Shown here in pieces: positions 35,268 to 39,634 of a stretch of DNA of 64,000 bases (positions are counted from its first letter, which is position 1; every line of letters starts with the position of its first letter). A program made the translations under genes and the position numbers. A model generated the notes under the pieces. The model did no database searches, had not been told where the DNA came from, and was given only the letters and a program-made list of their open reading frames with translations. The DNA is from Oikopleura dioica (taxonomy: Eukaryota; Animalia; Chordata), in NCBI GenBank assembly GCA_907165135.1, contig OU015568.1, positions 14,589,979 through 14,653,978 of the forward strand, in the 5' to 3' direction.

Positions 35268-38200
35268 ATGAAAACTACTAAATTATCTTTGATTTTTAGA
35301 GTCAATGTGGTTTCAGCGTCTTTCTTCGAGGAAACTTGCCCGTAATATGCGATTTAATTTTGAGTATAAAAATTTTCTAGAGACCAAGATCTTGGAGACG
35401 CCTGCGAGACCCAGTGTCGACTTACTTTTCTAGCCTGTCGAGAGGGATGCTCTGATACTCTTTGTGAGTCTGAATGCTTGACTGTCTACTCTGGTAAGTT
35501 ATCGGAATGAAAAAGCTGGCTTTGATTTCAGAATGCGTGAATTCATGTCCTTGTTTCGCTGACTGTCAAAACGGCTGTATCGATTGCGATCATCCTCTTT
35601 GTTACTGTAGAAATCCAGAAATATCGAATCCGAGCTACAAACAGTGTGTTCATGAAAACAGTCAAGAGCTGAAAAAATGCATTGATTCTTGTAAAGCCGA
35701 AAAGCCCTGCTTCAACGAGTGCTACGATGAATTCATGCGCAAAGTAGATCAGTGCCCATGTATGATGGATTGTCCAGACGGTTGTCCATGTACAAATGGC
35801 TATAATTGCGAACCATTCATTACTGTGCTCGGTCAGCGGAACACAGGGAATTTTAGCTATATAATCTCGAGCGATGGTCATTTCAAGGCAAGAAAAATAT
35901 AACCAGACTTTAACAGACGTATATCTTTTCGGGTTGACTTCGTTAATAGATCATATGATTTTGTATCGAACGTTTTCGTTTATTGGATAAACTTCATCAG
36001 GATACTAAACTTAAGATGAACGAAAAAGAAACAGAGGAAAAAGAATACTTTTATGTTGAGAGAGCAGTGTGAAATTGCTAACTGAGGAAAACAGAAAAAC
36101 AAGATCAAAAAATGGCTGTTTTTAGTCGAGCGCCAAGGTGGCCCAAAGGTGCTCTCTCAAGATAAAAGTATTCTTTTTCCTCTGTTTCTTTTTCGTTCAT
36201 CTTAAGTTTAGTATCCTGATGAAGTTTATCCAATAAACGAAAACGTTCGATACAAAATCATATGATCTATTAACGAAGTCAACCCGAAAAGATATACATA
36301 AAGTAAAAATCTTGCTTTTGTTAATGCGTTTGATTATTATGATAAAATGAACAAAGAATTTCCACGATCAAAGTTCGTCAAAATTAAAAGTGACCCTACT
36401 TCAAAAGATATCGCAGATTTTAATGAAAGCATTAAAATCCTAAAACCGTATCTCTCATGTTCTACTTTCAAATCTATTCAATGTAATCATAAAGTTAAAT
36501 CGAGCTTTGGATTATTAAAAGTTCATAAACCAGCTCCACATCCAGTACGCCCAATTATTGGTGCGCCTGGTAGCATTACTGCGAATATTGAAAAATACAT
36601 CTACTCCATTCTTTCCAAAATTGTTCCTGAGCTTAAATTCTCTTGTTCTTCTACTAAAGAATTTAAAAGTGCATTTACTAAAATCTCACCTCAAATAACA
36701 TCAGAACATTCTATTTGGAGTGCAGATGTCGTGTCAATGTATCCATCAATTGACAATGCTAAAGCTATTGACGTGATTATTGAAATTCTTTATAAAAATC
36801 CTCTTCGATATTTTAGCCCGGAAGATCTTCCAGATGGCACTATTAGTTATTTTCCCCCTAAAGATGTTTTTCGATCTATTCTTGTTTCAGTCTTACAAAA
36901 GTTTACTTCTTTTTCCACTCAAGAAGGCTACTATAAACAGAAATTCGGTTGCTCCATGGGCTCCAGACTTGCCCCTCTAGTAGCTAATATTTACATCTCT
37001 AGCCTGGAAACTGAATTTCTTACTACTGAAATTAAAAAGGGTAATATACTTTTCTGTAGGCGTTACGTCGACGACTACTGTCTTGTAACCAAAACTAGTG
37101 CCAAAAAACGAATTTTCAACTGTCTAAATAAGTTTGATCCGTCCATTAAAATGACCTGTGAAGATATGAAAGACAACTGTCTTCCTTATCTAGATACATG
37201 CATTAAACTTCATGACAATCAATATCACTTATTCTTTTACGAGAAAGCTAACAAAAGTGATATCCTTCAGAACTTTCGTACTGGAATCGCTCCTCTTAAT
37301 CAGAAAATATCAACGCTTACAGGCGAAATTTATCGCAGAAATAATACAACATCATGTCCGTATGCGTTGAATATTGCTCTTGAACAATTGACTGATCGCT
37401 TTCTTAAGAACTCATACCCGTTTCACCTCATTAAACGTATAATCAATGAAATTAAAAACAATAATTTCGAGCCACTGAAACGTGATGATTCTAAAATTGT
37501 GAAAAAGTTCAACTTGTGCCTCGATTTTACTAGTGAAAGATGCTACTCTATTGGACTTAGTCTTCAAAAACTCTTCCGAAAAGTAACACCTTCTTTTGCC
37601 TAGTCGTTAGTTGGAAAACCATACGACTCGAAAGAGCCTTAGGCAAATTTCTCAAAAGAGTCCCTGAAAAATACGATTTGTGTGATCTCATTTATTCCTG
37701 GAAATGTGACTGTAAAGCGCAATACATTGGTCAGTCCAAACGAAGAGCTGGTATTCGTTGGACTGAACATGTTAATTCTAACAACCAGAATAAAAATGCG
37801 TCTTCTTCCATCTTCAAACATTTTTCCACTTGTAAGACCTTTCAAAAAAGCTATGAAACTTACATTAGTGAGCCAAGCACAAAAAATCTCACCAGTCAAT
37901 ACAAGACTAAAATCGCCCAATCGAAACTTGCTCTAGAGTCCTTTCACTCTAAAAATCCTCCGAAAATTCGATACAAATTTTCAAAAAATGACTATGCTTT
38001 AAAATACTTTGATGTTCTGCAAACTAATCTAACTAATGAGAGTCAAAGGAGAAGCGCTGAACAATTTCTTATTTTACTGCATCGACCCTCCCTTAATGAA
38101 CAATCTGATTTCAAACAGTTCAAAACTTTTTGATTTAGTCGAGCACTGTTTTGGGCCACCTTGGCGCTCGACTAAAAACAGCCATTTTTTGATCTTGTTT

Positions 38201-39431
38201 TTCTGTTTTCCTCAGTTAGCAATTTCACACTGCTCTCTCAACATAAAAGTATTCTTTTTCCTCTGTTTCTTTTTCGTTCATCTTAAGTTTAGTATCCTGA
38301 TGAAGTTTATCCAATAAACGAAAACGTTCGATACAAAATCATATGATCTTTTAACAGACGTATTCAAGGAAAATCGGTTATGGTCGATTCCAGACCCAAT
38401 TTATTACGAGTCTCCGTCAAGTGATAAAGCGATCCCGTATTATTTGGGTGATATTGGAACGGGTTTTCTAAATGGGGAGATTTACCTTTTTGGTGGTGCT
38501 AATGACTGGAGAAAGGTGTATAATTATCATAATAGAATCAATAAATTTCACAGGGTTAAGATTGCTAAGATTATTGACTGTTCAGTACAAGAAATTTCTA
38601 TAAGGCTCAATAATAATTTTGACTCATGGGTTGGCTCGTTGGTAACCGTACCTACTATTCCAAATGAAGTTTTGCTTTGTTTCGGAGAGGCGGGAACGGA
38701 TGCACATCGAAGATGCGAAATTTTTAACGGGGTAGAGGCAAAAATGAACGCCTTTACCTTGAATAATCATCATCGGAATGGCTGCGTTGCATTAGATAAC
38801 AACATGCCTACTGCTATTGGTGGAGGGACAAGCAACGACGAATTTCCAATGACCTCAACTGTTGAAGTTTGAGTTATAACTTATAAAAAATTAAAAGAGT
38901 CTAAGTCGAAATAGCTTTTTTACAACTCTTGCTAGTTCTTGGTATTAGTGGTTGGACGTATGAGCAGGCGCATCCAAAAAAGCTCATTAATCTTGGGTGC
39001 CTATCAGTTGACAATGGGATCATCACTATTGGAGGGGAAGAGCGCATCGACAATACCTGGGTGCAGACCAATCATATCTATCTTTTCCGCCAGAATTCTT
39101 GGTCTCTCGTCGGAAATTTACAAGAGGTTTCAAACAATTGTCTTTTATTGTGTGATTAAATTTTTCAGCCGACAAGAAGAACCTCAAACATCTTTTTCGG
39201 CTCATATTTTTTGTCATTCTCTGGAGCTTATGGGTGAGACTTTTATTTATTTTAATTTGTTATACTCTCAGAAATTCTGCAACTGAGCGAGCTGAGTGGA
39301 ATGGAACTCACGTGACCTCGGCAAAAGTCATTAACCGAAATGATATTTACATGCCGGATGCAGTTATTTTTGAAACTTTGCCGGATCGCTGCGCAAATAC
39401 TTGTGAAAGCTACTGCTTCCCTGTAGAATAA
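35268..39431 (+). CDS. Secreted Cys-rich + kelch-like beta-propeller protein; one intron carries the Penelope-like element
   Basis: CETQCRLTFLACREGC...CPCFADCQNGC...CPCMMDCPDGCPC, followed by GG-containing repeats (EIYLFGG, PTAIGGG, IITIGG). Exons resume in frame after 38368 (ENRLWSIPDPIYYE). Confidence 0.75.
35963..36005 (-). ncRNA. Minimal type I hammerhead ribozyme (antisense copy in the inverted pLTR)
   Basis: Exact reverse complement of the copy at 36211-36253. Confidence 0.8.
36211..36253 (+). ncRNA. Minimal type I hammerhead ribozyme
   Basis: GTATC-CTGATGA-A-GTTTA-TCCAA-TAAAC-GAA-AACGTT-C-GATAC: stem I GTATC/GATAC, conserved core, 5-bp stem II, palindromic stem III AACGTT, UUC cleavage triplet (C at 36248). 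Confidence 0.85.
36347..37603 (+). CDS. Penelope-type reverse transcriptase (N-truncated, ends at a frameshift)
   Basis: PVRPII, SADVVSMYPSI, YKQKFGCSMGSRLAPLVANIY, RYVDDYC, LPYLD motifs. Confidence 0.93.
   Translation: MNKEFPRSKFVKIKSDPTSKDIADFNESIKILKPYLSCSTFKSIQCNHKVKSSFGLLKVHKPAPHPVRPIIGAPGSITANIEKYIYSILSKIVPELKFSCSSTKEFKSAFTKISPQITSEHSIWSADVVSMYPSIDNAKAIDVIIEILYKNPLRYFSPEDLPDGTISYFPPKDVFRSILVSVLQKFTSFSTQEGYYKQKFGCSMGSRLAPLVANIYISSLETEFLTTEIKKGNILFCRRYVDDYCLVTKTSAKKRIFNCLNKFDPSIKMTCEDMKDNCLPYLDTCIKLHDNQYHLFFYEKANKSDILQNFRTGIAPLNQKISTLTGEIYRRNNTTSCPYALNIALEQLTDRFLKNSYPFHLIKRIINEIKNNNFEPLKRDDSKIVKKFNLCLDFTSERCYSIGLSLQKLFRKVTPSFA
37595..38133 (+). CDS. GIY-YIG endonuclease domain of the Penelope-like element (frame shifted by one base relative to RT)
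   Basis: CLVVSWKT...DLIYSWKCDCKAQYIGQSKRRAGIRWTEH...HRPSLNEQ. Confidence 0.9.
38292..38334 (+). ncRNA. Minimal type I hammerhead ribozyme (3' pLTR)
   Basis: Identical to 36211-36253; predicted cleavage after C38329. Confidence 0.85.
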
Positions 39432-39634
39432 AAGAGTTCAGAAATAAAACATTTGATTTTGTTGACGTCATTGTAAAAATATTTTTTTAATTTTATTCCT
39501 GAGCTTTCAAGCTTATCTGCTCATTTTCAAAGAAAGGTTGACAGGCTACGATCTAACAATTTGCTTAGAAGTAGTGTAAGGCGGATTGAAACATTTTGAA
39601 ATTTTCGCTTTATTGAACAAAGGAACTCATGTAT

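Follow-up and report, generated by a model that had tools for sequence, protein, structure and literature searches.

Here, we report on a Penelope-like element (PLE) inserted in an intron of a gene of the appendicularian tunicate Oikopleura dioica, and on the three copies of a minimal hammerhead ribozyme motif that the element carries. The analysis covered a 64,000-nucleotide (64-kb) stretch of contig OU015568.1 (assembly GCA_907165135.1, positions 14,589,979 to 14,653,978, forward strand), hereafter called the window, and all positions below count from its first letter; the features are collected in Table 1. The insertion is 2.4 kb long (35923-38349) and is bounded by a target duplication of 13-14 bp. 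Direct and inverted terminal repeats, 5′ truncation and a target-site duplication, the marks by which PLEs are recognized, are all present. The inverted arm at the left end is 225 nt long; 35942-36147 is 100% complementary to 38150-38355 over 206 nt, and 35919-36066 is 99% complementary to 36150-36297 over 148 nt, with a loop of 83 nt from the arm to the first sense copy. A tail of 25-29 nt (36269-~36295) marks the internal junction and the outer side of the arm (35923), but the insertion ends on the right, at 38349, without it. The arms are almost perfectly identical, which suggests that the insertion is recent.

Table 1. Features of the host gene, the inserted element and its hammerhead motifs, in window coordinates.
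Feature	Position	Strand	Basis or remark
Host exon upstream, Cys-rich, ends ...YIISSDGHFK	35532-35887	+	47-53% identity to O. dioica P0013/P0015/P0016
Host intron, GC...AG	35888-38368	+	placed by gap-free protein homology over the junction
Left target-site duplication, (T)TTAACAGACGTAT	35909-35922	.	identical to 38350-38363
Inverted arm (3′ region of the element with ~25-29-nt tail, reverse-complemented)	35923-36147	-	repeat analysis
Antisense hammerhead copy	35963-36005	-	exact match; own covariance model, 53.9 bits, E 6e-13
Direct pseudo-LTR fragment (copy of 38231-38349) plus tail 36269-~36295	36150-36297	+	direct repeat, 125 nt, 98%
Sense hammerhead copy 1	36211-36253	+	exact match, direct reading, own covariance model
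Copy 1: stem I; core; bulged A	36211-15/36249-53; 36216-22; 36223	+	direct reading
Copy 1: stem II; GAA; palindrome AACGUU; C17	36224-29/36233-38; 36239-41; 36242-47; 36248	+	direct reading
Copy 1: predicted cut	between 36248 and 36249	+	
Reverse-transcriptase part of the open reading frame	36302-37618	+	matches residues 91-529 of P0001 (relative of 700 aa), 70% identity
C-terminal part, putative GIY-YIG-like endonuclease	37594-38130	+	reading frame differs from the reverse-transcriptase part
3′ untranslated region/pseudo-LTR, without tail at its end	38134-38349	+	direct reading, repeat analysis
Sense hammerhead copy 2	38292-38334	+	exact match, own covariance model; predicted cut between 38329 and 38330
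Right target-site duplication	38350-38363	.	direct reading
Host exon downstream, ENRLWSIP..., Kelch-like	38369-38869	+	homology

The host gene (35300-39430, plus strand) belongs to a family with a Cys-rich N-terminus and a Kelch-like region. A search with the downstream open reading frame (ORF) returned proteins of 385-461 amino acids (aa) that are O. dioica gene models, and their N-terminal halves match the upstream exon up to ...YIISSD; the named relatives in the search (P0013, P0015, and P0016) are all O. dioica gene models, at 43-50% identity. These homologues read DGHFKENR.Y without a gap, a reading that the window gives only when ...GHFK, ending at 35887, is joined to ENRLW..., starting at 38369; the start of the upstream exon was placed by its tttcag acceptor. 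With the element the intron measures 2481 nt and before the insertion it measured 40 nt, a 62-fold enlargement, and the 40-nt segment is taken as an intron because it is out of frame, holds a stop codon, and has GC...AG ends. The insertion point lies 5 nt upstream of the acceptor of this 40-nt intron, and the target duplication repeats the CTTTAACAG stretch before the acceptor. A GT-AG intron with its acceptor within the target duplication (35877-35917) was considered and dropped, as the homologues read DGHFKENR over the junction; the element is intronic under either the GC-AG or the GT-AG model. The initial annotation had placed the element within an intron and in the orientation of the host gene, a placement supported here by homology to O. 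dioica gene models. The duplicated CTTTAACAG stretch also makes a second acceptor-like site at 35916-35917; if this site were used, the host mRNA would splice into the element.

The coding body of the element begins with a reverse-transcriptase (RT) part, whose ORF (36347-37603) ends at an in-frame stop at 37601-37603. In a protein search its homologues range from 72% down to 27% identity, one of them from Branchiostoma, and most carry RVT_1 together with Pfam HTH_animal and DUF8422 in precomputed annotation. On the window ORF itself, Pfam RVT_1 scores 29.4 bits, just below the 29.6 cut-off, and in the relatives 38-53 bits; by sequence similarity, the element has a reverse transcriptase of the PLE type. 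The C-terminal 150 aa carry the motif IYSW-C-C-YIGQ-R-EH, and the window motif ...IYSWKCDCKAQYIGQSKRRAGIRWTEH... aligns (E 3e-4) to the GIY-YIG region of the relative P0010, which stands above the Pfam GIY-YIG cut-off (24.7 versus 22.6). The RT and putative endonuclease parts, continuous in all relatives, are separated in the window by a frameshift near 37594-37600; it coincides with a short T run (37590-37603) and may be a sequencing error. The relatives L002 and L005, which are tandem, have an ORF start ~45 nt past the hammerhead and then an N-terminal region of ~240 aa. This region is absent from the window copy, whose match to L005 downstream of the hammerhead stops at 36298. With the N-terminal ~240 aa missing and one frameshift, the window copy is defective, and a copy in this state cannot be autonomous. 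The insertion is a young, non-autonomous copy of a PLE.

Read directly, each 43-nt copy of the motif is GUAUC / CUGAUGA / A / GUUUAU-CCA-AUAAAC / GAA / AACGUU / C / GAUAC. The 33-nt string from C3 to C17 has exactly three matches in the window (36216-36248 and 38297-38329 on the plus strand, 35968-36000 on the minus strand), where 100 dinucleotide shuffles give an expectation of 0. The hammerhead core is complete in all three copies: C3-A9, G12-A14, A15.1...U16.1, and C17 at the H17 position. Stem I, of 5 bp, is open, which makes the motif type I; stem II has 6 bp, including the G10.1-C11.1 pair (G36224-C36238), and is closed by a loop of 3 nt (CCA); a single extra A (36223 in copy 1) stands between A9 and G10.1; and a 6-nt palindrome, AACGUU, takes the place of helix III. 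Within one copy, helix III could reach 2 bp with a CG loop at most, a structure disallowed by the ViennaRNA energy evaluation. The initial annotation had described three minimal hammerheads, two sense and one antisense, and our direct reading reproduces its copies, coordinates, core, stem I, and palindrome; the distance of 2081 nt between the sense copies is recovered by repeat analysis, and the new 5′ ends that it expected at 36249 and 38330 agree with the cuts predicted after C36248 and C38329. In all three copies the cleavage site is intact on both sides, and the 3′ end of the insertion, 38349, lies 20 nt beyond the site. Since both sides of the cleavage site were copied, the template RNA was uncut at those sites. 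Each copy of the 3′ end carries the family hammerhead, which explains why the same motif stands three times in the window, twice in sense and once in antisense.

A single sequence of this kind fails both the Rfam search and the stability test (see below), and the support must therefore come from relatives. Briefly, the contigs encoding nine relatives, from marine metagenomes including Tara Oceans, were fetched and scanned with a structural descriptor. A hammerhead was found on the ORF strand in seven of the nine contigs, and in six under a stricter descriptor (0.03 expected from first-order Markov simulations), always ~100-170 nt past the stop codon or 45-130 nt upstream of the ORF that follows; an eighth, in L003, is interrupted by the contig end and was found independently by our own covariance model (E 7e-4). 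The initial annotation had named an unconserved core as evidence that would speak against a ribozyme; what the relatives present is a kept core, variable at position 7 and with the known U3-A8 covariation in L007 and L008, together with compensatory changes in the stems. Stem I changes from GUAUC/GAUAC to GUUCC/GGAAC, GUAC/GUAC, or AUGUC/GACAU, and stem II from GUUUAU/AUAAAC to GUCACA/UGUGAC, GUAUU/AAUAC, or GAGUU/AACUC; among the four closest sequences both sides have changed in 5 of 14 pairs. Also kept are the single bulged nucleotide (A, U, or G), the G10.1-C11.1 pair, and a palindromic helix III, which is AACGUU, AUAU, or AGCU.

A metagenome scan with the core and palindrome fixed returned 108 stretches, about one-third of which are GC-rich, unstructured chance matches; the remainder are hammerhead-like motifs of several families, eight contigs being of the window's own family. 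In a model-based alignment of 11 distinct sequences, compensatory changes occur in seven of the nine pairs of helices I and II, paired cells amount to 93.6% versus 14-41% in slid-partner controls, and no shuffle reaches the observed values. Please note that this alignment was fitted to the covariance model, and that the pattern used for retrieval prescribed the core and the palindrome as well as the innermost pair of stem I; the distant hammerheads were aligned by the covariance model, MAFFT having misaligned helix II. In intact copies of the window's family the core and the palindrome AACGUU, both fixed by the retrieval pattern, are invariant, and some copies have decayed, e.g., by a change of G12 to A in L060 and L098. 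Because seven of the nine stem pairs show compensatory changes, we regard the motif as a conserved RNA structure rather than a chance resemblance, and as a structure of this PLE family it appears well supported in spite of the alignment caveats.

Several further motifs were met in the course of these scans. L060 and L098 each hold two motifs ~230 nt apart on opposite strands, one of each pair being without G12, and in L079 and L096 an RT fragment lies inverted beside a sense motif; an inverted pseudo-long terminal repeat (pseudo-LTR) recurs in the family in these marine metagenome contigs. A more distant relative, L009, has at 2450-2489 a core that reads UCGAGAA, i.e., C for U at position 4 plus U3-A8, and it represents an unusual variant of the core, unless the copy is simply inactive. 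The window holds a fourth hammerhead-like motif of another type at 39490-39535 (minus strand), just beyond the last coding stretch of the host gene and on the strand opposite to it. Its core is UUGAAAA (U3-A8), with a bulged U, the palindrome AGCU, and C17; stem II has 4 bp and starts with a G-U pair, and stem I has 5 bp with one G-U. Counting it with the three copies of the element, the descriptor matches in the window number 4 versus 0.12 expected. The fold of this motif is not stable, and no PLE coding remnant was found near 39490-39535; a weak similarity of 39434-39462 to the segment that follows the hammerhead hints at a PLE relic.

The three motifs are an already well-described kind of feature, the minimal hammerheads of PLEs (Cervera and de la Peña 2014, PMC4209133). 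Metazoan PLEs carry minimal hammerhead ribozymes (min-HHRs) in both pseudo-LTRs, and in these helix II is larger and helix I shorter. A min-HHR is defined by an extra nucleotide between A9 and G10.1, a G10.1-C11.1 pair, and a palindromic 15.2-16.2 segment, and pairs of them lie ~3 kb apart in tandem or 100-700 bp apart on opposite strands (PMC4209133). All of these features are found here (bulged A36223, G36224-C36238, AACGUU, a 6-bp helix II, a 5-bp helix I, and the location in pseudo-LTRs), in keeping with the initial annotation, which had assigned the motifs to the minimal type I hammerheads of the Penelope-like kind with a palindromic stem III. The window motifs share with the min-HHRs of metazoan PLEs the type I topology, the core, the unpaired nucleotide after A9, the long helix II and short helix I, the palindromic helix III formed between copies, the pseudo-LTR location, and the arrangement in unit-length and opposite-strand pairs, and nothing essential differs. 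With 6 nt, the palindrome resembles that of the Drosophila, rotifer, and shrimp variants, whose helix III is small and palindromic, and differs from the fully minimal form, which has 2-4 nt. In the searchable literature we found no published report of oikopleurid-like tunicates as carriers of min-HHRs.

With the canonical endonuclease-bearing (EN+) PLEs (Penelope/Poseidon/Neptune), the window element shares the pseudo-LTRs, the 5′ inverted arm, the target duplication, and an optional tail (~25-29 nt in the window) that accompanies one cDNA start but not the other (cf. PMC11167929); its RT would likewise be followed by a putative GIY-YIG-like domain. Compared with them its family is compact, the ORFs of the relatives having 630-700 aa. 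Non-LTR retrozymes, which have been proposed to derive from PLE pseudo-LTRs (PMC7229834, bioRxiv 10.64898/2026.07.22.740005), are likewise type I with a weak palindromic helix III and act between tandem copies. However, retrozymes are short non-coding tandem units with one hammerhead each, whereas here two sense motifs, at the unit-length spacing given above, stand on either side of a 2-kb RT-EN body; neither a tandem array nor circular RNA was seen at the window element. Retrozymes are reported to be depleted from introns (bioRxiv 10.64898/2026.07.22.740005), and the window copy is intronic. Intronic host ribozymes such as the hepatitis delta virus-like (HDV-like) ribozyme of mammalian CPEB3 also place a self-cleaving motif in the sense strand of an intron; those are single, conserved host sequences active as monomers, in contrast to the window motif, which is recent transposon cargo, dependent on a dimer and, in the predicted folds, masked by an antisense copy.

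The folding calculations bear on what the two sense copies could do in the host pre-mRNA. To be active, a dimer has to be domain-swapped, with the A15.1 of either copy paired to the U16.1 of its partner, and each stem I is therefore also formed between the copies. For two isolated motifs the hammerhead dimer has -11.7 kcal/mol, versus -17.0 for a non-hammerhead duplex. With the antisense copy included, the energies are much lower: the 43-mer duplex of the plus-strand RNA of 35963-36005 with a sense copy has -69.9 kcal/mol, and the hairpin 35919-36297 has -257.6 kcal/mol. In the fold of the complete intron (-761.0 kcal/mol) the antisense copy is fully paired to one sense copy, and enforcing the hammerhead dimer raises the energy to -559.5 kcal/mol, a cost of 201.5 kcal/mol; for a transcript of the element alone (36150-38355), which starts after the arm, the corresponding cost is only 6.6 kcal/mol. 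During transcription, the arm and sense copy 1, being 83 nt apart, would pair first and leave copy 2 without a partner in cis. The initial annotation had held that the intron contains a complete, cleavage-competent pair, and this is the part of it that our models do not sustain: the antisense arm is predicted to pair with one sense copy and the dimer would come at that cost of 201.5 kcal/mol, so that the two sense copies would not both be free and in-cis cleavage of the host transcript would be unlikely. The host pre-mRNA would instead hold a near-perfect 148-bp hairpin (35919-36297) or a 206-bp long-range duplex (35942-36147/38150-38355), either of them a potential substrate for RNA interference or adenosine deamination.

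Taken as a whole, a young PLE insertion in a tiny intron, carrying family hammerheads that depend on a dimer and are unlikely to cleave the host transcript in cis, is our best explanation of the locus, and we consider it quite probable. A PLE would have entered the tiny intron of the plus-strand host gene and left there a 225-nt inverted copy of its 3′ end, a 148-nt direct fragment, and a 5′-truncated RT-endonuclease body. With only a 6-nt palindrome for stem III, the active fold needs two copies, domain-swapped, with stem III and both stems I formed between them. By analogy with the one biochemically studied PLE, cleavage probably also needs the element's protein: the Anolis PLE hammerhead was cleaved only when that protein was present (PMC11167929). 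The role of the hammerhead likely lies in the element's own RNA, in the processing of multimeric or read-through transcripts. The inverted arm is most simply taken as a by-product of insertion, through priming from both DNA ends or template switching; in Anolis both DNA strands are cleaved and extended, and reverse transcription starts at two internal sites that bracket an optional tail of 30-40 bp (PMC11167929). Two cDNAs started at two such alternative sites from the two target ends would account for the pattern of tail presence and absence seen here (cf. PMC11167929). Once in the host pre-mRNA, the antisense arm would form its near-perfect duplex of 148-206 bp with one sense copy.

Some of our results weigh against this explanation and are given together here. 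The Rfam hammerhead models gave no match at the gathering score and none at E<=10 on the 2.9-kb region, the Rfam matches obtained being chance snoRNA-like ones only. The absence is expected because these models include a helix III hairpin and the motif is without one. The search with hammerhead models that the initial annotation had proposed as a check was negative with Rfam; our own covariance model recognizes the copy at 35963. The isolated monomer has a minimum free energy of -5.7 kcal/mol and is not more stable than shuffled sequences (z -1.44), and its best fold pairs the core bases GAUG with CGUU. For the endonuclease, the C-terminus of the window gave no direct Pfam GIY-YIG match and a profile search of solved structures was also empty, so the assignment depends on transitive similarity via P0010. 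Four RNA runs that carry the same species label put no reads, at >=90% identity, on either the host exons or the body of the element, and with zero coverage there no cleavage, transcript, or splice junction was seen at the locus in these runs; either the samples are too divergent or the host gene is silent in them. Thermodynamic folding takes no account of kinetics, proteins, or helicases, and two separate RNA molecules could pair through their free copies.

What the motif does for the element admits a second reading, in which it is mainly a structural or protein-binding element of the PLE RNA (e.g., for ribonucleoprotein assembly near the start of reverse transcription) and self-cleavage is dispensable or vestigial. 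The copies keep both sides of the cleavage site, with the insertion end 20 nt past it, as an uncut template would leave them, and catalytic mutants of the Anolis PLE had no effect on insertion in vitro (PMC11167929). The same RNA runs supply a further point. Thirty reads (runs X1 and X4-X6) touch only 35959-36007 and 36209-36257, at 90-95% identity and with flanks unlike the window, and stem from another, related PLE family that is transcribed in samples of the same species label. Their hammerhead differs only in loop II (A inserted after 36229, C36230 to U, C36231 to A or U) and by C36248 to U, and U at this position is still an allowed H17; their flank shares ACGAAGUCAAC with the tail of the window element. 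They reach 83-186 nt on both sides of the site, and because they span it, uncut RNA of the related family exists; on cut RNA the reads are uninformative, given the oligo-dT priming of the libraries and a depth much below what would be needed. A purely structural role does not explain why the invariant positions are exactly the catalytic core and the H17 site, beyond the helices alone, and cleavage in vitro is documented for PAc and other PLE hammerheads (PMC11167929, PMC4209133). We judge it unlikely, and prefer hammerheads that would act as ribozymes in dimers.

The difference made by the arm could also be given a purpose, namely that the inverted arm is a selected safety catch, masking the ribozyme in read-through transcripts started upstream and leaving transcripts from the element's own promoter competent. 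The contrast between the two dimer penalties, +201.5 kcal/mol with the arm and +6.6 without it, is what such a device would require, and inverted arrangements recur in the family (contigs L060, L098, L079, and L096). However, inverted 5′ arms are a common by-product of PLE insertion, as the opposite-strand pairs of PMC4209133 and the extension of both strands in PMC11167929 indicate, and a long perfect hairpin could, as double-stranded RNA, equally be harmful. Selection for such a catch seems improbable to us, and so does the related proposal, drawn from the folding models, that the arm discriminates between transcripts by origin, host read-through RNA being locked in the duplex and own-promoter RNA forming the active dimer. 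If it were true, the host pre-mRNA would be spared, or the duplex would feed RNA interference, and a transposon ribozyme would have a built-in regulatory logic. An arm that arose as a by-product of insertion remains our preferred account.

That the two sense copies in the host intron dimerize and cut the host pre-mRNA, with lower host output or unit-length RNA as the result, was also considered. Both copies are intact and identical, the element is intronic and co-oriented with the gene, and the domain-swapped dimer is an allowed nested structure at the energy given above for isolated motifs; a review describes the dimer model and its low rates (PMC6765202), and cites Lunse, Weinberg and Breaker 2017 for reported cleavage of PLE hammerheads in dimeric form. 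Against this stand the arm, which would sequester one sense copy and burden the dimer with 201.5 kcal/mol in the intron, and its adjacency across the 83-nt loop, by which it would pair first in transcription. Single min-HHRs showed no cleavage, and even dimeric constructs were very slow in vitro, cleaving poorly and mostly at non-physiological Mg2+ (PMC4209133). The only reconstituted system required the PLE protein, and no RNA-seq reads of the Anolis PLE begin or end at the cleavage site (PMC11167929); the window copy's own ORF is broken. We regard cutting of the host pre-mRNA as very improbable. A mere chance resemblance to a hammerhead, for which the empty Rfam search and the unremarkable monomer fold might be cited, has practically no likelihood left, being refuted by the conserved position, the invariant core, and the compensatory changes in seven of nine pairs.

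Current understanding of these ribozymes is unchanged by the locus, which would matter only if an effect of cleavage or masking on the expression of the host gene were shown. It is a neat natural example in three respects: a PLE entered a 40-nt intron close to its acceptor and enlarged it 62-fold, the insertion seems to record two reverse-transcription starts, one with and one without the tail, and an antisense arm would shift the folding options of a ribozyme according to where transcription starts. The main gain is a confirmation: a compact PLE family of appendicularian tunicates and marine metagenomes also carries minimal hammerheads, as PLEs elsewhere are known to do, and its helices I and II covary cleanly.

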